The translations under genes and the position numbers were made by a program. Below the pieces are notes generated by a model. That model saw only the letters and a list, made by a program, of their open reading frames with translations. It ran no database searches and was not told where the DNA came from. From the sequence record ON000910.1: a DNA stretch of 64,000 nucleotides, one strand, 5' to 3'. Positions 3,815 to 64,000 of the stretch are shown here, piece after piece (the stretch's first letter is position 1; each line of letters begins with the position of its first letter).

Positions 3815-6800
3815 ATGTCAGAATTCCGCAGAGCATTTCGTGCGTCAGGTCTTGATGCAAGTGGTCAGAATGTCATTAACGTAGCAGACCCACGAGCAAA
3901 TGAATTGTTCGACGGTATTAACCAAGGCTACTTTATTGAAGAGAACACTGTTCAAGAGTATGACCCAACACGAGATCACTATAAAGTAGACTTTATCGTT
4001 GAGTTCAATCAACGTCTATACAAAAACATTACCGAAATCAATGCACCTGAACCTTTTGACTCGCAGAAGTGGCAGAAAATGCGTACCGACCCTGAATGGG
4101 AAGATACTGATTCATCGGTAGGCGCAAACGTCGGTGACTTCTTGTTGTTAACAGCAAGCTCGGCAATCACTATTACACTGCCTGAAACACCATTAACAGG
4201 TGACACAGTTACAATCAAAGACGGTAAAGGCGTTCTTACAACTTACCCTTGTACGATTGCAGCAGCGGGCGGCTTGACGATTCAACATTACGGCATTGAC
4301 GGTTCAATTGAGTCTAAACCGAGTATTTCATTCAATACCCCTAACAGCACTATATTCTTAGTGTACAACGGTATTGCATGGACATATCAGATCAATCAAG
4401 AGTTATACAATACGTATATTGACGACAGTCACCCAACTCAACAGGGTGGGTACTTATCAACTGGTGGTTATTTCACTAACGTTGGCGAGACAGTCACATA
4501 TGACGGTTCAGTTAAGAAAATTGCAATTTCTGTACCACTGAACCCGAACGTGGGCGATACAATTCATCTTAAAGATGTTGCGTATCTTGAGAATCAAACG
4601 TCGATTCAAATCGGTGTGAACCCGACTGCTACGGGTCAGGTTATTCAAGACCCTATTTCAGGCGAACGTAGTTCTGTTATCAGTCTTGATACTATCGGCG
4701 GCGCTGATATCACATTTATCGATGATAACGGTACTGGCGTATGGGTAATCACAATCGCGAACAACCCGCATTTATGGAACTATGTCGGGGATTCAAGCGC
4801 GGTTGAATTGAAGCCTCGTTCTCGTTACGCTATCGAAATCGCAGATGCTGTTCCTGCAATGACGATCACACTACCAGAAAAACCAGCCGATGGTGACTGG
4901 ATTGAGATCTCACACAACAAAACAGCTCATAAGAAAGTAACGATTCAAGTTCACCCGAATTTCGGTGATGATGACCCAGGTCACGGCCCCGATGAATACA
5001 AAGTATTCTTGGACTTTGAAACATATCGTTATCAAAAATACCGTCATTACGTTGATTTCGTTCCATTCTTCGTTGAATCATTCGAAATTAGTGATTATGA
5101 CAGCGGTTATTCACTAGTTCTATACTACGACGCGAGTCGTAAAGTATGGTCGTTCGGTAACATCGCGACTCGTATCGATATCGCTGATGAACTATACCGT
5201 AAACGCCCGGGTATCGTGCCATTAGCTGACCCAACGGAAGCTCTAGCACACGGGATTGAATATGCGCACCCTGAAGATGCAGCAGACCCTTGGGCTGATC
5301 AAAACCCACTGAAAGATCACGTAATCACGGTAGAGACGCTTGACGCTCGTCGTGCAGGTGAACAGCAAGTCGGTATGGCTCGTGTTGCTACTCTTGGAAC
5401 TGATGAAGCTCTTGAAGAATCGCGTTCTGGTACGTTTGTTCGTTACCCAGATACAAACTTCAGACATGATCTGTTCATAACACCACGTAGCTTGAATGCG
5501 CGTACAGCAACTGAAACACGTCGCGGTGTAGTTGAAATCGCAACTCAAAACGAGACGCGAAGCACAACTAACGATGTTCAAGTTCTAACACCGATGAAAT
5601 TCCACGCTGCACAAGCTGAAGAAGATCTAACAGGTGTTGCGAAACTAGTCGAAGCGTCGAACAACATCAATGCTGGTGGTATTGTTACATCAACAGCGAA
5701 TATGCGTTCAGACCGTTCAGTAAATGGTCTTGACAATACAGTATATGATAAAACTGATCATCTGCGTATCGTAACGCCAAAAATGCTTGATGAGTATCGT
5801 GCTACAGAGAATCAACCTGGTACATTATGGGTTGCTAAGAGCAGTGAACTTCGCATCAACGACTCAACAGTTGATAACGCGATCATCACGCCTAAGAAAT
5901 TAGCAGCGTGGAAAGCAAGCTCAACGGTTCGTGGTATTGCTCGTTCTGCCACACAGTCTGAAGCAAATGCAACAACAGGAACTGGTGAATCGTGGACAAC
6001 AGTCTTCATCACACCAGAAACGTTGAATAGCAGAACAGCAACTGAATCACGTCGTGGTGTTGCGGAAATCGCAACTCAAACTGAAGTTGACTCAGGGACA
6101 GACGATACTCGTATTGTTTCACCACTTAAACTGAAGACATGGCTTGATCGTGATCATTTCGTGACAGCAGGAACAGATGGTCTATCGCATACTGGTACAG
6201 TGTGGGGCGACGTTACATTCAGCATCGCGTCAGCGACTGAAACACAACGTGGTACACTACAAGTTGCGACTCAAGTAGAAGCGAATGCCCAAGCTGGTGC
6301 GCTTGATGATGTAATCATCACACCACAGAAGTTAAATGCGCGTCGTGCTACAGAAAATCAAACGGGTATCGTGCGTCTTGCGACTCAAGCTGAAGTCGAA
6401 GCAGCGACAGCTAGTAATGAAATTGTTGTTACTCCGAGTGATTTGCTACACTGGACTCGTTACTCTGACAGCTCACGTGCAAATGAAAGTCGTTATGGTA
6501 ACGTACAAATCGCAACACCAGCAGAAACATTTGTTGGTAACAGTACAGACGGTTCAACACAAGCGTATACGTCGTACTTGCGTGTTCCATATGCAGTTTC
6601 ACCTTACGGTCTGCATTATGCATTGCGCAACTACTTACCGCTAAACGCTAAAGCTGATGACTCAGAATTACTAGATGGCTTGAACAGTACACAATTTGCA
6701 CGTCGTGACATCGACCAAACAATCAATGGCACGTATACGTTTAGTGGCGAATTCGTGCAAACGAAAGGTGGCGGTTATTTCTTAGTTGCAAACCCAACGA

Positions 6801-7530: not shown

Positions 7531-10224
7531 ATGTACGAAAGACTTAAACGTGACGGCGATTGGCTATTAATCTTTCGCCATGATTCAACAGGAGGTGTGT
7601 TTTTCACCTCCGATGCTGAAGCACGCAGCGTCGGGACAGATCCCGACGTTGAACAAAAATTCAGTGCGTTGAACTCACTTGAGGAATTTCGCCGTGAAGA
7701 CGGCAAATTCCAATTCAAGCTTCATTACCCAGAATTAGATGTAACAAACATTTGGAAGCAAAGCAGTAACTTTGCAGCTATTGATGTAGGTCAATATCTT
7801 ACAAACGGTAACTTAGCGGGTGGGGAATACGTCACTGAACAAAATGCAAAAATCGGTTCTTGGGTTATTGTTGAGAAAGAAAACCCAGGGTCATCAAAAT
7901 ACGTCGTTGAGCAACCGACTGCGGCACTAGAAGATCAATTACGTTTTCAAGTTCCACAATCACGTTTACTACCAAATAAAACATATACATTATCATGTTG
8001 GGTTGGGTATGAAGTAGACACTGATCACGATACGGCAGCTATATTTCACGCTCGTTGGTATGATGGTTCAAATAATGACTATACATTAGGCGAACATACT
8101 GCGGGTGATGTGTTTGAATCGGCAGGAAACGAGTTGATAGTTGACGGGATTCTTTGGAAGCGTCATTATGCTCGTTTCACAACGCCTAGTACTCTTTCAT
8201 CGAGTAGCATGTACTGGTATTGTTGTTATACAACTGATACAGGTAAATTACCAACAGGTAAGCGTTGGCTTACAAACTTCATGATTACAGACTCGCAAAT
8301 CGTCAAAAACTATACTGGCGATTACGACGCTACAACTCGCGGCGTTAGAGGCTATGAACCGATTTACATCGAAAGCACTGCAAATGATTGGGGTGGAATA
8401 GAATATAGCGTTTCAGCCAGTACGTTAGCAGACGGTTCAGTTGACATATCAAATTGGTATTGGGCTATTGGTGCAAAACGTTCTTGGCCAGACGCGACTA
8501 CTACATTCCCGGGACCTGGTATAAACGTAAATCAAGCTGAATTGTGGGTATATGCTCCTGTTGGTTCTAGAATCGGTGAATATGAAGTATCAGCTAGGCA
8601 TATCAGAGATTTTTCAAATAATAATATCAGACTGTTAGCAACAGGGGTCGCGGACGGAAGTTCAAACCTAGCATCATGTTATATAAACGATGTTAGCGTA
8701 TTCACACCCGAAGCTAAACAACAATATCAAGTTCGTTTGATTATATTCAACGACGATATGACAGTCAAAACTAATAGAAAATATCTTCTGAGTAGTTCTA
8801 CAGAACGTAGCAACTTCATCAACGGTCTGAACGGGTTAACAACAGAGCCGTTTGTTATTCTATCAAATGGGTCAATGTACGCAGATTCTGCGGTAGATGC
8901 TGCAATTCAACAGTATCACCCGATTGAGTATCGCGGTAGCTCTTACTTCAGTCAATACAGTTATAGTTACTGTGCATTCGGTACAGGTCAATTAGGTATT
9001 GTATATGATCGTTGTATGTTCGACCATGAATCTGATGGTGACAGTGTTGTTGATACTGCATTCGAAGATAAAGCAGGGATTGGTTCAAACGGGTACGGAA
9101 TTCCTCTAATCGAAACAATGACTGTTCCTACTGATACACGTCAACTTCTTTCAGATTATGGCGTGATAGACGGACAGTACTTGATTTACAAAGCTCGTGC
9201 ATGTATTGATCGAAATTCAGCAATCGCAAATGAAGACAAAATGGCGAATCTTCGATTCTACAACGTAGTTGGCGATGAAGTCGGCAGGCAGAATATTCAT
9301 TTTTACAGTGCAGAGAAAAAAGAAACTCAAGAATTTTTCGTACAAGTACCAACAGGTGCAGTTAAATTTGCAGTTTGGTCTAACTTACAACCAGAGTACT
9401 TTGATTACGTCATATTGACTAAAGGCGGAATGTCAACCCCGAGTGGTATACCTCATATGATTTCGAACATAAACGGTATCGCTGCTCAAGAGATTGTCAA
9501 TTCACCGATTACAGGTAACGTAGTTGATGACGATAGCTGGTGGCGAGCATATAACGCAGATTCAAACTTGTATGCAGGTATTAATATGCCAGTACAAGAA
9601 ATTGACAACGTTCAATGGGGTAATTATGTGCTTTCAGGCGGTGAAAAGTGTTTCACACGTACAGCAGGCTCATCATCTCCGATTGAAATGCAAGAAGTAT
9701 CAATCGACCCATCTCGACCATACTTCTTATCGTTATGGGTTAATGCTATAGACAAGCAAAATAGCTTCTTATATTTCAGTGTACGTGTCAAGAATTCATC
9801 TGGTGACTATAGAACTCTGAGATTATCAGACGGTAGTCGAACATCTACATATATCAATGTTGACAGAGTGTACGGGTTTCCTGCTTCAAACAATCAATGG
9901 GTTTTATTGCAGGGGTATATTCTACCACATGATTGGACAGATGCACAACATCAAGCGTTTGCTGATAAGTTTAACAACTATTTCGGTGTAATAAACCCAG
10001 AAGATGATCCGACATATCAGACATCAAAGGGTGTAGGTTATTACACCACAAACGCAGACAAGTCTTTTAGATGGAATGCTGATGATGATAAGTTGATACT
10101 TCGATACAAAGATGAAACAACCGTTGAAAATCAAGTAATGTGGGCTTTCCCAATTGTTACTGAAGTCAATGTTGCTAGTTCGTTTGAAGACAACTTCACT
10201 GCAATCGACTTTGCAATGAAATAA
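7531..10224 (+). CDS. gp35: Long tail fibre hinge gp35, with large N- and C-terminal extensions
   Basis: Central region (about aa 360-640) follows T4 gp35 (NNIRLLATG...LSDYGVIDGQYLIYKA...LRFYN...VQVPTGAV.F); directly after gene 34. Confidence 0.8.
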   Translation: MYERLKRDGDWLLIFRHDSTGGVFFTSDAEARSVGTDPDVEQKFSALNSLEEFRREDGKFQFKLHYPELDVTNIWKQSSNFAAIDVGQYLTNGNLAGGEYVTEQNAKIGSWVIVEKENPGSSKYVVEQPTAALEDQLRFQVPQSRLLPNKTYTLSCWVGYEVDTDHDTAAIFHARWYDGSNNDYTLGEHTAGDVFESAGNELIVDGILWKRHYARFTTPSTLSSSSMYWYCCYTTDTGKLPTGKRWLTNFMITDSQIVKNYTGDYDATTRGVRGYEPIYIESTANDWGGIEYSVSASTLADGSVDISNWYWAIGAKRSWPDATTTFPGPGINVNQAELWVYAPVGSRIGEYEVSARHIRDFSNNNIRLLATGVADGSSNLASCYINDVSVFTPEAKQQYQVRLIIFNDDMTVKTNRKYLLSSSTERSNFINGLNGLTTEPFVILSNGSMYADSAVDAAIQQYHPIEYRGSSYFSQYSYSYCAFGTGQLGIVYDRCMFDHESDGDSVVDTAFEDKAGIGSNGYGIPLIETMTVPTDTRQLLSDYGVIDGQYLIYKARACIDRNSAIANEDKMANLRFYNVVGDEVGRQNIHFYSAEKKETQEFFVQVPTGAVKFAVWSNLQPEYFDYVILTKGGMSTPSGIPHMISNINGIAAQEIVNSPITGNVVDDDSWWRAYNADSNLYAGINMPVQEIDNVQWGNYVLSGGEKCFTRTAGSSSPIEMQEVSIDPSRPYFLSLWVNAIDKQNSFLYFSVRVKNSSGDYRTLRLSDGSRTSTYINVDRVYGFPASNNQWVLLQGYILPHDWTDAQHQAFADKFNNYFGVINPEDDPTYQTSKGVGYYTTNADKSFRWNADDDKLILRYKDETTVENQVMWAFPIVTEVNVASSFEDNFTAIDFAMK

Positions 10225-10248
10225 AAGAGCCCTTCGGGGCTTTTTTTA
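10225..10248 (+). terminator. Intrinsic terminator after gene 35
   Basis: GAGCCC-TTCG-GGGCTT stem with UUCG loop, then a T run. Confidence 0.88.
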
Positions 10249-10251
10249 TAC

Positions 10252-10343
10252 GCGAAGCGAAAAACGGTAAGAGGCGGAAAAATTCCGTCTCATCTTAGTA
10301 GTATTAGTGGTTTTAGTGATATTAGAAGTATTAGAGGGATTAG
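10252..10343 (+). repeat. Hairpin plus 6x TTAG (9-bp period) element, copy 1
   Basis: GCGAAGCG at 10252; hairpin 10271-10291; TTAG at 10295, 10304, 10313, 10322, 10331, 10340. Confidence 0.95.
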
Positions 10344-10344
10344 T

Positions 10345-10374
10345 GTTTAAGCAACCAATGATGAAATGTATACT
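10345..10374 (+). promoter_or_regulatory. Putative promoter GTTTAA-N18-TATACT upstream of uvsY
   Basis: -35-like GTTTAA 10345-10350; -10 TATACT 10369-10374. Confidence 0.6.
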
Positions 10375-10392: not shown

Positions 10393-10806
10393 ATGAAGCT
10401 ACAAGATTTAAAAATTGAATATCACGAAGACGTGAAAATTGACACAACTGCTTTAGAAACAGCAGCTATTCGAATTCCCGTTCTTCATGCGAAGTGGCTT
10501 GCATACCGAGCCGATGCAAGACAACTACTTATCAAAGCTGAAATGAAAATGGAAGCTGTGAGAAAAGACCGCTGGCTCTTTTATAGCGGCAAACATGACG
10601 ATGAAGTTTGTGATTTCATCGTAGAAAAGAGTGAAATGAAATATGCTCTTGCGGGTGATGAATATCTTCAACGTGCAATTGCTACTTTTCAACACATGAA
10701 AGATGTGTTATCATTCATCGAAGAAGCTTTGAAAGGCATTAGTCAAATGGGCTTCACAATCAAACACATTATTGACAACAGAAAAATTGAGAGTGGTATA
10801 GTATGA
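10393..10806 (+). CDS. uvsY: Recombination mediator UvsY
   Basis: MKLQDL...EDVKIDTT.LE..A..IP.L.AKW...YSGK...KSEMK...GDE; 137 aa as in T4. Confidence 0.93.
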   Translation: MKLQDLKIEYHEDVKIDTTALETAAIRIPVLHAKWLAYRADARQLLIKAEMKMEAVRKDRWLFYSGKHDDEVCDFIVEKSEMKYALAGDEYLQRAIATFQHMKDVLSFIEEALKGISQMGFTIKHIIDNRKIESGIV

Positions 10807-37509: not shown

Positions 37510-37597
37510 TTTTTGTTCCCTTGTATTGTAAATGAACATAGCTTACTACTATTTATAGCAATACAAAGAAACAGAGAGGGAATGTCTTTATGTGTTA

Positions 37598-37627
37598 ATA
37601 ATAGCAAGCATATTCATGGTATTAAAC
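37598..37627 (-). promoter_or_regulatory. Putative promoter GTTTAA-N18-TATTAT downstream of repeat copy 2
   Basis: Minus strand reads CGTGTTTAATACCATGAATATGCTTGCTATTAT. Confidence 0.55.
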
Positions 37628-37639
37628 ACGTATTTAATA

Positions 37640-37732
37640 CTAATCATACTAATACTTCTAATATCACTAAAACCACTAATACTACTAAGATGAGACGGAA
37701 TTTTTCCGCCTCTTGCCATTTCTTCGCTGCGC
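37640..37732 (-). repeat. Hairpin plus 6x TTAG (9-bp period) element, copy 2 (inverted)
   Basis: CTAA at 37640, 37649, 37658, 37667, 37676, 37685; 37649-37714 is the exact reverse complement of 10269-10334. Confidence 0.95.
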
Positions 37733-37738
37733 TAATAC

Positions 37739-37769
37739 AAAAAAAAGGGTGAGAAATCAATCTCACCCG
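37739..37769 (-). terminator. Terminator after the short tail fibre genes
   Basis: Minus strand: GGGTGAGA-loop-TCTCACCC followed by a T run. Confidence 0.82.
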
Positions 37770-53899: not shown

Positions 53900-55117
53900 T
53901 TACCCTAGGCTCACTGTTGAACCGTCTAATGCCGCAGCCCCTGCGAGACTAAGCGTTGCGCCACCACCGTCATCACTAATTGATGACGCCGAACGTGTAT
54001 AAGACGAACTAACGCTTTCTGACATCGAGCCACCGACTGTTATTGTGTAATTACCGCTGATATTCTGCGTGTAATCGCCCGTGACGTTACTTTGAACATT
54101 CCCGCCCACAGTTTGATTAACATTCCCGTCAACGTTCTGTGTGACGTTCTGATGCACTGTCTGACTAACATCTTTATCAACTGTTTGAGTAACATTCATT
54201 TCAACATGCTGATCAACATTACCCTTAACATGCTGCTTCAAATCACCATCAACTTGCTGCGTGACATTTTGCTGGCAATAGAACGTCGCGTCACCGACAA
54301 CGGTTATATTCAAGTTCCCTTTGATAAAGACATTCTGATCTTTTTGAACAATCTCAAAATCATCACCAACAATCTTTGTAACTTTACTGCCGTCAGGGTG
54401 AATTTCTTCAAATGTACCTGTTCGATGATACGTATGTAAACGCTCTGCACCCACAGTGTCATCAACCTCTCTGATGTGCCCAGATTCAGACTCGTGTACA
54501 TGATTGAACGGGTACTGCGCTGCGTACGGCGTCTCTTTCTCGTTATAAACGGGACCGTTTTGATTATATCCCGCAATCGGAATGTCTTTCTCTTCGGCTG
54601 CGCGTTTACTAGCGATTATTTCATGTGGTCTATACACATAAGGCGCATCGCCACTATCAAAATCGCTCTGAGATTGATTTTCATCATACACATCGGGATC
54701 TACATCGTTTCGAGCTAAACGGTTTGTATCGGGCTCATTAAGTTTATCAGCTAACGGGTATTTTTCGTTTGGGTCATTAAACCCCTTACTGCCGTTAGCT
54801 AATTCTTCAGGTATACCAGGCAAAACACCCATCGCAATTGCATCTTGATGCAACTTATCTCTGAAAAAGCCGAATACCCATGTACCTTCAACTACCCCTA
54901 TTGGTGTATTACCAATCCCGTTCATTGCAGCGTTATCAAGCGACTGCATAGGGTGAACCCAAAGAAGTTCTTCAGTTCGAATACCTTGATTTGAACTTTT
55001 CTTCTCGGGGTGAAACCCAATCATTCTGACTTTAATTCTACCGAGTTTGAGTGGGTCGTTTGTTCTATCTTCAACAACACCAGTCCACCAATCAAACCCA
55101 TCTAATCCCATAAACAT
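53900..55117 (-). CDS. gp5: Baseplate central spike gp5 without a lysozyme domain
   Basis: OB-fold GVVEDR.DPLKLGR..VR..G.H; YPFNHV.ESESGHI.E.DDT.G.ER; octapeptide beta-helix repeats; only 405 aa. Confidence 0.93.
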   Translation of the reverse strand: MFMGLDGFDWWTGVVEDRTNDPLKLGRIKVRMIGFHPEKKSSNQGIRTEELLWVHPMQSLDNAAMNGIGNTPIGVVEGTWVFGFFRDKLHQDAIAMGVLPGIPEELANGSKGFNDPNEKYPLADKLNEPDTNRLARNDVDPDVYDENQSQSDFDSGDAPYVYRPHEIIASKRAAEEKDIPIAGYNQNGPVYNEKETPYAAQYPFNHVHESESGHIREVDDTVGAERLHTYHRTGTFEEIHPDGSKVTKIVGDDFEIVQKDQNVFIKGNLNITVVGDATFYCQQNVTQQVDGDLKQHVKGNVDQHVEMNVTQTVDKDVSQTVHQNVTQNVDGNVNQTVGGNVQSNVTGDYTQNISGNYTITVGGSMSESVSSSYTRSASSISDDGGGATLSLAGAAALDGSTVSLG

Positions 55118-63518: not shown

Positions 63519-63543
63519 AAGCCCCTTACGGGGCTTTTTTTGT
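63519..63543 (+). terminator. Terminator after gene 3
   Basis: AAGCCCC-TTAC-GGGGCTT followed by a T run. Confidence 0.85.
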
Positions 63544-63556
63544 ATCTGAATCTAGA

Positions 63557-63651
63557 GCGAAGCGGCAGAATTTGGTGTGAGGCCCAAAAATTGGGCATCA
63601 TCTTAGTAGTATTAGTAGTTTTAGTGAAGTTAGAGGTATTAGTAATATTAG
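63557..63651 (+). repeat. Hairpin plus 6x TTAG (9-bp period) element, copy 3 (diverged)
   Basis: GCGAAGCG at 63557; hairpin 63579-63599; TTAG at 63603, 63612, 63621, 63630, 63639, 63648. Confidence 0.93.
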
Positions 63652-63673
63652 AGAATAGGCACCTTGTCGCATT

Positions 63674-63703
63674 GTTTAGAAACCACCAGATCTGTCGTAT
63701 AAT
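63674..63703 (+). promoter_or_regulatory. Putative promoter GTTTAG-N18-TATAAT upstream of gene 1
   Basis: -35-like 63674-63679; -10 63698-63703. Confidence 0.62.
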
Positions 63704-63739: not shown

Positions 63740-64000
63740 ATGATTATAGGAATCAATGGACAAAAGCGTTCAGGGAAAGATACCCTTGCTGCTGCCATTA
63801 AAAAATCTCATAGTGATAGCACTTACATTTACAAATTTGCCGACCCGATTAAAGAAGGGTTGTTCATTGGGTTAAAAGAATATGGCTATGATTATGAAGA
63901 CATAGACGGTCAAACAGATTGTGACCGCGAAGTTCCAGTATTTACGTTAGACGAAGCAATTGAACTTGTATTAAAGTGCTGTGACTACGCAAACGTAGAT
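63740..64000 (+). CDS. gp1: Deoxynucleoside monophosphate kinase gp1 (runs off the window)
   Basis: Hand-translated: MIIGINGQKRSGKDTLAAAI...YKFADPIKE, P-loop and FADP motif; follows gene 3 as in T4. Confidence 0.92.
   Translation, partial: MIIGINGQKRSGKDTLAAAIKKSHSDSTYIYKFADPIKEGLFIGLKEYGYDYEDIDGQTDCDREVPVFTLDEAIELVLKCCDYANVD

Follow-up and report, generated by a model that had tools for sequence, protein, structure and literature searches.

Proteins that read short repeated motifs act on RNA as well as on DNA. TRAP binds 9-11 (G/U)AG repeats at several sites per genome, some of them lying over a Shine-Dalgarno sequence, and in the trp leader a 5′ stem-loop aids binding; HutP sites are UAG repeats in Bacillus RNA. 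On DNA, arrays of 4-bp boxes with short spacers are classic ribbon-helix-helix operators and centromeres, with the ACTC-N4 boxes of ParG, the ω heptads and the metboxes of MetJ as precedents. Here we analyse a short-period TTAG array beside a hairpin in a 64-kb window, that is, positions 1-64000 of Vibrio phage XZ1 (ON000910.1), a KVP40-like phage of Schizotequatrovirus. Judged by its sequence, the array belongs to a lineage-specific composite cis-element of the KVP40-like phages that consists of a box of the form GCG(N)AGCG, a spacer of ~12 nt, a 9-bp hairpin, ATC and 5-7 repeat units. The element is kept at six orthologous gene junctions.

T4-type phages are the reference for replication, transcription timing and post-transcriptional control. 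Promoters and PeSL (promoter-early stem-loop) cassettes aside, we know of no described cis-element in them that recurs across the genome and carries a strict short-period motif. In a PeSL cassette, as found in nt-1 and KVP40, a G+C-rich stem-loop that carries a T run precedes an early promoter (TTGYVH-N17-TAWWAT), after which come a Shine-Dalgarno sequence and a start codon; the paper that reports it in these two phages describes no box, second hairpin or TTAG array (PMC4122927). T4 origins of replication share no local motif, R-loop formation requires no specific sequence, and oriF and oriG each pair a middle-mode promoter with a downstream unwinding element (PMC3016281). The sole T4 origin with evenly spaced 12-nt repeats is oriE, where they lie beside an early promoter and where a link between these iterons and origin activity is unproven (PMC3016281).

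Architecture and distribution of the element

The pattern (TTAGN5)5TTAG has exactly three matches in the window, each with 0 mismatches, and 100 dinucleotide-preserving shuffles of the window gave 0 matches even when 3 mismatches were allowed. Tandem Repeats Finder reports period 9 at the same three loci, and a covariance model built from 23 copies recovers exactly these 3 in the window at 102-103 bits, the best hit beyond the mapped copies in 550 kb having E = 0.26. These searches and direct reading agree with a sequence-only reading of the window, which had described three copies of common architecture spaced 27.4 and 25.9 kb apart, each preceded by a terminator and by a gp35-, gp12- or gp3-type gene, with a 21-nt AAA-loop hairpin and ATC before an array strand that contains no C; all of this holds in the three window copies. 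As a count the set stands for the window and falls short genome-wide, because three is half of the six copies in full XZ1. An element-only query of 111 nt finds matches in 51 phage records, all of them Vibrio phages, and nearly all ~250-kb KVP40-like phages, XZ1 included, carry six copies per genome.

All copies were mapped in two complete genomes, KVP40 and the more divergent phage 1.081.O, by a relaxed periodic scan and the covariance model. KVP40 has exactly six (K1-K6), each given below with the gene upstream and the gene downstream; copy 1 of the window is the K6 locus.

K1, KVP40 35.9 kb: SprT-like gene, then nrdH
K2, KVP40 79.2 kb: open reading frame (ORF) 0135, then an unannotated ORF and dam
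K3, KVP40 129.7 kb: ORF 0251, then lipoprotein 0252
K4, KVP40 184.0 kb: gp3, then gp1
K5, KVP40 210.0 kb: gp12, then wac
K6, KVP40 238.2 kb: gp35, then uvsY

Seven copies are found in 1.081.O, at the same six junctions, with the gp3-gp1 copy tandemly duplicated. The duplicate of box, hairpin and array between gp3 and gp1 spans 207174-207440 (-) of MG592456.1, the two starts being 164 nt apart, and a promoter follows the downstream member only. Copy number and orthologous positions are stable even though DNA identity in the uvsY region is only ~77-80% between phages. The sequence-only reading had asked about conservation in related phages, and it is strong in KVP40, nt-1, ValKK3, VH7D, 6E35.1a and 1.081.O, so an absence of conservation, which that reading had named as grounds for its refutation, does not apply.

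Comparison of core and flanks over 26 copies separates what is constant from what is not. The hairpin, ATC and the array are constant, most arrays (18 copies) having 6 units, whereas four have 5, three have 7 and one copy has a TTAA unit; six units, which had been taken as exact, hold for the three window copies and are the usual number, not a rule. A GCG(N1-2)AGC box stands 9-15 nt 5′ of the hairpin in 17/26 copies. On its own, GCGNAGCG is at chance frequency genome-wide in KVP40 (25 observed vs 24.6 expected) and was dropped as an independent signal, and the hairpin motif is never found without the array. K1 lacks the box. K2 in KVP40 and VH7D has no terminator, and K3 in KVP40, VH7D and 1.081.O has neither terminator nor promoter. 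The ORFs upstream of K2 and K3, whose 3′ ends contain the box, are unrelated to each other and not paralogues, and a cassette made of ORF plus element was rejected. The terminator and promoter that had been counted as parts of the module are thus separable, PeSL-type flanks, and like the GCGNAGCG box they are missing from some orthologous copies. At the five loci other than K3, the array lies upstream of a promoter with conserved hexamers and variable 17-nt spacers, whose -35 overlaps the last unit in K1 and K6.

K3 has a layout of its own. The upstream stop codon coincides with the start of this copy or lies within a few nt of it, and the array ends at the start codon of the lipoprotein gene; in KVP40 and VH7D, AGGAG lies inside unit 5 and the start codon comes after unit 6. 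Since this copy has no promoter or terminator of its own, it must be transcribed within an mRNA, where it forms the translation initiation region of the lipoprotein gene. Such an overlap with a translation initiation region is seen at K3 only, and at none of the other five loci.

In the window, every copy has the same order of parts, namely an intrinsic terminator, GCGAAGCG or GCGCAGCG, the 21-nt AAA-loop hairpin, ATC, six 9-nt units and a promoter-like site. From the end of the box to the first TTAG there are 35 nt in copy 1 (GCGAAGCG), 36 nt in copy 2 (GCGCAGCG) and 38 nt in copy 3 (GCGAAGCG). Copy 1 lies between a gp35-type hinge connector gene (PHROG) and uvsY, copy 2 between a gp12-type tail collar fibre gene and fibritin (wac), and copy 3 between a gp3-type tail completion protein gene and a gene for dNMP (deoxynucleoside monophosphate) kinase.

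Array cores (pattern scan): 10295-10343 (+), 37640-37688 (-) and 63603-63651 (+)

Copy 1
10222-10224: stop codon of the 897-aa ORF (gp35-type gene), just before the terminator
10228-10247 (+): terminator, AGCCC-TTCG-GGGCT and a T run; the plus-strand reading was made by eye, the scan listing the minus-strand reading only
10252-10259 (+): GCGAAGCG box, by direct reading
10271-10291 (+): hairpin GAGGCGGAA-AAA-TTCCGTCTC, 9 pairs including one G·U
10292-10348 (+): ATC and six 9-nt units TTAG-W-R-R-W-W (pattern scan, Tandem Repeats Finder, covariance model)
10346-10374 (+): early-type promoter TTTAAG-17-TATACT for uvsY (ATG at 10393), read by eye and under the scan threshold; its -35 overlaps unit 6

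Copy 2
37747-37768 (-): terminator after the gp12-type gene (terminator scan)
37725-37732 (-): GCGCAGCG box, by direct reading
37692-37712 (-): hairpin GAGGCGGAA-AAA-TTCCGTCTC, identical with that of copy 1, by direct reading
37635-37691 (-): ATC and six TTAG units (pattern scan, Tandem Repeats Finder, covariance model)
37598-37625 (-): σ70-type promoter match TTAATA-16-TATTAT (scan)
37550-37557: late promoter TATAAATA downstream of the copy, followed by the fibritin (wac) start, by direct reading

Copy 3
63519-63541 (+): terminator after the gp3-type gene (terminator scan)
63557-63564 (+): GCGAAGCG box, by direct reading
63579-63599 (+): hairpin GAGGCCCAA-AAA-TTGGGCATC, with two stem pairs that read CG where copies 1 and 2 have GC
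63600-63656 (+): ATC and six TTAG units (pattern scan, Tandem Repeats Finder, covariance model)
63675-63703 (+): promoter TTTAGA-17-TATAAT for the dNMP kinase gene (ATG at 63740) (scan)

Matches to σ70-type promoters are no commoner in the scanned loci than in shuffles, and these promoters are credible solely because their hexamers are conserved while the 17-nt spacers vary between phages. The orthologues of the copy 1 promoter in KVP40 and 1.081.O read TTTACA-17-TATACT, and the copy 3 promoter keeps its hexamers in both phages while its spacer varies. On either strand, the sites at 37747-37768 (copy 2) and 63519-63536 (copy 3) get terminator-like scores, and at 10228-10241 (copy 1) the minus-strand reading scored; these terminators thus may also halt antisense transcription from the downstream genes.

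Few copies were found outside the KVP40-like phages. One genome per species from 185,579 bacterial and archaeal species held no true member, the 4 matches all being chance 3-unit, intragenic ones, and marine metagenomes yielded a few divergent copies. In IMG/VR, anchored patterns found family members in KVP40 and VH7D only, the remaining matches being coding repeats; a loose array pattern was swamped by unrelated 9- and 45-bp coding repeats of giant-virus bins, and the uvsY loci there include too few close relatives for a useful comparison. Four AT-rich metagenomic phage contigs (L129, L152, L162, L163) carry GCGTAGC..AAATTCATC ahead of TTAG units, but these units are irregularly spaced and the hairpin is missing; the contigs were set aside as chance resemblance. 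Aeromonas phage phiAS5, the nearest other large relative inspected, has no element at its gp3-gp1 junction, where the genes are 7 nt apart, which indicates that T4-type genome organisation does not require it. With phiAS5 as the comparison, we regard the element as an innovation of the KVP40 lineage.

The sequence-only reading had not recognised the array as a described element, and we found no reason to differ. No Rfam family reaches its gathering threshold in the window; below threshold, copy 1 scores at most 26 bits, where 60 would be needed. The element is not annotated in GenBank records, where the region is blank or spanned by doubtful ‘hypothetical protein’ ORFs, and no description was found in searchable papers or databases; an earlier mention in the KVP40 genome paper is possible. 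In records of the D480/K575/6E35.1a group and CZ01, coding sequences named ‘Hypothetical protein’ run across hairpin and array, and these are probably spurious ORF calls over a non-coding repeat. The array is thereby mis-annotated as protein-coding in several GenBank records, and could serve as a clean sequence marker for the genus.

Several other features were recorded along the way. The ORF downstream of K2, at ~79.3-79.9 kb in KVP40 (L003 29530-29700), is unannotated in RefSeq (old KVP40.0136) and has the 1.081.O homologue NVP1081O_148. The KVP40-like phages have a gene for a strong Alc homologue (PF17527, E = 2e-86; L002 34303-34929). A tRNA-guanine transglycosylase-like (DpdA-type) gene is annotated in 1.081.O (L183 48315-49871); the KVP40 ORF at L003 21508-22887 is a positional counterpart only, and 7-deazaguanine synthesis genes occur in both phages. 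The window also holds three diverged ~76-nt direct repeats (62-79% identity) and a related 55-nt pair at 5474-6389, in the long tail-fibre gene region, which are probably repeated structural modules of the fibre protein, as well as two adjacent 24-nt tandem repeats of 2.1 and 2.5 copies at 54156-54260 and a 10-nt repeat, TATAGTATGA, of 3.8 copies at 1530-1567.

A possible reading in the transcript and its alternatives

We tentatively favour, with rather less than even confidence, the view that a multimeric or cooperatively binding protein reads this element in the transcript, in a strand-specific manner. The hairpin would anchor the protein, the UUAG units would align it with one subunit per 9 nt, and the bound protein would decide the fate of RNA that crosses the operon junction. 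At K3, where the array carries the ribosome-binding site, binding could control translation of the next cistron; at the other copies, it might govern processing, decay or insulation of terminator read-through. What we infer here is RNA as the active form, the protein reader and the effect of binding.

Several lines of evidence point to reading in the transcript. All copies are co-oriented with their flanking genes (6/6 in KVP40, 7/7 in 1.081.O and 3/3 in the window). A short core is held at a strict period, with the TTAG positions near-invariant (593/600) and the five spacer positions drifting within classes (TTAG-W-R-R-W-W), as would fit a repeated short recognition motif in fixed register; every unit position along the array has its own sequence flavour. 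The consensus fold of 23 distinct copies contains the 5′ hairpin only, with 95.7% of cells paired. In it two pairs are double-compensatory (GC to CG), one pair is G·U in 14 sequences and G-C in 6, and one sequence has U·G. RNA folding also favours the sense over the antisense strand (-13.1 vs -8.3 and -11.8 vs -10.5 kcal/mol), the copy 1 hairpin in sense RNA reaching -13.1 kcal/mol with z -5.8. Finally, there are the layout of K3, the confinement of the hairpin motif to sites with the array, and the precedent of TRAP.

Spacer variants are common to the copies of one genome and differ between genomes, those of 1.081.O being mostly TTAGTGATT, TTAGTGTTC and TTAGAGAAA, which indicates gene conversion between sites 26-54 kb apart. 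Absence of C does not by itself mark an unstructured single strand, as UUAG·UUAG fold-back is possible and the excess of G over C comes mostly from the purines at positions 6-7; a real structure formed by array fold-back was likewise rejected, no pair changing on both sides.

Several points weigh against reading in the transcript. A strong intrinsic terminator stands immediately before four to five of the six copies, whose arrays would then be transcribed only by read-through, and five of six precede a promoter whose transcripts exclude the array. The even spacing of sites round the genome is not predicted by a role in RNA, and neither it nor the terminator placement of most copies is accounted for. 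The compensatory change in the hairpin is probably one event spread by gene conversion, which leaves the covariation real but thin as support, and stems are mismatched in a few copies. Among spacer bases C makes up 2% and G 21%, a scarcity that mostly follows from the purine preference at unit positions 6-7 and that a protein bound to double-stranded DNA could impose likewise. The sense array RNA can fold back weakly through UUAG·UUAG wobble pairing, and such a fold, were it to form, would contradict a simple single-stranded array. No partner protein was found and no TRAP- or HutP-like protein was identified in these phages, none of the eight candidates scanned against Pfam having an RNA-binding ring domain.

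Known readers and signals were also considered and rejected. RegA, suggested by the selection of UAA triplets by RB69 RegA, finds no support, since there is no UUAG in the translation initiation regions of KVP40 genes 44, 45, 62, regA, rIIA and rIIB. The leader of KVP40 gene 32 has ACAAUA repeats and no UUAG, which removes the analogy with the gp32 operator. A Rho rut site on the antisense strand is contradicted by inconsistent YC dimers, an RfaH ops-like non-template hairpin by the absent GGT loop, and DnaA trios or boxes by the lack of DnaA boxes. The array has no start codon for a coding reading, and the frames of in-frame UAG stops are inconsistent between copies.

Unlikely, but the best surviving of the alternatives, is an operator array on double-stranded DNA, in which a small phage DNA-binding protein, for example of the ribbon-helix-helix type, binds cooperatively to tetramer boxes at 9-bp period and represses, activates or insulates the promoter or roadblocks read-through. 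The unit is an ordinary directional 9-bp motif (TTAGWRRWW), a conserved σ70- or T4-early-type promoter lies just downstream in five of six loci, with the -35 overlap at K1 and K6 already noted, and within PeSL-type cassettes (PMC4122927) the element occupies the stretch from stem-loop to promoter. Against this, K3 is promoterless and yet conserved in three lineages, the upstream member of the 1.081.O tandem pair has no promoter of its own, and the distance from array to -35 ranges from 2 to ~26 nt between loci. That range, together with K3, is also what tells against the strict upstream-activator version put forward by the sequence-only reading. Nor does an operator give a role to the hairpin, which is obligatory, shows compensatory and G·U changes and folds better in sense RNA; a palindromic site would conserve sequence, not pairing.

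The other proposal of that reading, distributed replication origins or helicase-loading sites, seems to us distinctly unlikely. Under this model the A+T-rich array unwinds beside an active promoter or in an R-loop, the sense strand is locked open by a mini-hairpin at the box and by the 9-bp hairpin, and the G-free, unstructured complement, whose predicted folding energy is 0 in the antisense array, serves as a loading pad. GCG(N)AGC matches the very stable DNA mini-hairpin consensus of single-stranded-DNA phage origins. Evenly spaced direct repeats such as iteron origins carry are present (5-7 units at an exact 9-bp period), and the sites are over-dispersed round the circular map, the KVP40 gaps being 26-54 kb (P ~0.006 for a minimum gap ≥ 26 kb among six random points on a circle). 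The statistic was computed post hoc and, since synteny carries the positions from phage to phage, counts as one observation. Copy 1 (K6) lies at the uvsY promoter, in the neighbourhood of T4 oriF and beside genes 34 and 35 (oriG), and oriE offers a pairing of evenly spaced repeats with an early promoter (PMC3016281).

Yet T4 origins have no motif in common and their R-loops form independently of sequence, and the iterons of oriE themselves have no shown link to origin activity (PMC3016281). The unwinding element of oriF and oriG lies downstream of its promoter, whereas here the array is upstream in five loci, with the promoter firing away from it, and K3 is promoterless. Those origins have a MotA-dependent middle promoter; the promoters here are early or σ70-type and lack a conserved TGCTT box, which a MotA-dependent promoter has at -30 in addition to its -10. 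K4-K6 are shielded by strong terminators from upstream transcription, and the upstream genes are late; K3 is an operon-internal 5′ untranslated region, and the phiAS5 gp3-gp1 junction does without the element. We know of no initiator protein in this phage family. The genes repEA and repEB are not annotated in KVP40 or 1.081.O, where no dedicated homology search was made for them. A shade more doubtful still is the idea that the KVP40-like phages differ from T4 in using six evenly spaced sites, defined by sequence, as origins or for helicase loading.

Very unlikely, in our view, is a protein-independent RNA processing cassette, in which a ladder of host RNase E sites just 3′ of the hairpin would sever polycistronic or read-through RNA at the junctions and leave a hairpin-protected upstream 3′ end. 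In T4, RNase E plays a major part in mRNA processing, and T4 relatives have kept its sites (PMC3014915). The element lies in sense orientation at cistron or operon boundaries, and 100/130 unit junctions fit the consensus R-N-W-U-U, a count for which no background rate was calculated and which is partly a consequence of the U-rich motif. For RNase E, however, A3 and G4 need not be invariant, nor the register exactly 9 nt or the unit number fixed, and the problem of terminators upstream applies to it just as it does to reading by a protein in the transcript.

A selfish or neutral repeat, that is, a functionless long variant of the PeSL recombination cassette homogenised by gene conversion, is highly improbable: PeSLs have been proposed as recombination substrates (PMC4122927), spacer variants are shared within genomes and differ between them, the element was tandemly duplicated in 1.081.O and it overlaps the 3′ ends of unrelated ORFs, but copy number and orthologous positions are stable at the identity noted for the uvsY region, TTAG cores and period are near-invariant against drifting spacers, all copies have a single orientation relative to genes, and the covariance model finds no extra, partial or decaying copies. 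There is also a small but appreciable chance that the element acts through some mechanism outside those weighed here.

Relation to described systems

The element appears to belong to a known kind of cis-acting protein platform, in which a hairpin adjoins a short-period repeat array, although this particular one is apparently undescribed; the suggestion of a discrete non-coding element that recurs, and that plausibly binds protein at multiple sites of its array, finds support in the patterns reported above. Its discreteness, its conservation and its six fixed junctions would imply a trans-acting reader, and with it a regulatory layer specific to large marine vibriophages. An RNA-binding oligomer as reader would make this a new analogue, in phages, of TRAP/HutP-type control. 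If, instead, the sites are origins, the T4 family would have its first origin system based on a shared motif, and its origin biology would become testable from sequence.

The flanks of four to five copies match a PeSL cassette: those of K1 and K4-K6 fit, with ~100 nt of extra conserved sequence between stem-loop and promoter. The element is this ~100-nt insert, and it exists without the stem-loop (K2 in KVP40) or without both flanks (K3); it is therefore not itself a PeSL. With T4 oriE it shares evenly spaced short direct repeats by an early-type promoter, synteny in close relatives and an unproven role (PMC3016281). It differs in that oriE is a single locus with 12-nt repeats, whereas here there are six loci, a 9-nt period, an obligatory hairpin, other junctions and one copy that is a 5′ untranslated region.

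Ribbon-helix-helix arrays (ParG/parH, ω of pSM19035 and the MetJ metboxes) are alike in having contiguous direct repeats with a 4-7-bp core and a 7-9-bp period, placed upstream of promoters at several loci per replicon. Theirs act as double-stranded DNA and require no hairpin, unlike the present element, whose hairpin is obligatory and changes in ways that preserve structure, and one copy of which has no promoter.

The likeness to TRAP and HutP sites lies in a short NAG motif at fixed spacing on the sense strand (here UUAG every 9 nt), in several sites per genome, in the overlap with a Shine-Dalgarno sequence and start at K3 and in a 5′ stem-loop as in the trp leader. The differences are of period and core (9 nt with a 4-nt core here, against 5-6 nt for TRAP and 7 nt for HutP), of unit number (six here, 9-11 or 3+3 there) and of setting, most copies here standing between a terminator and a promoter with no terminator/antiterminator switch.

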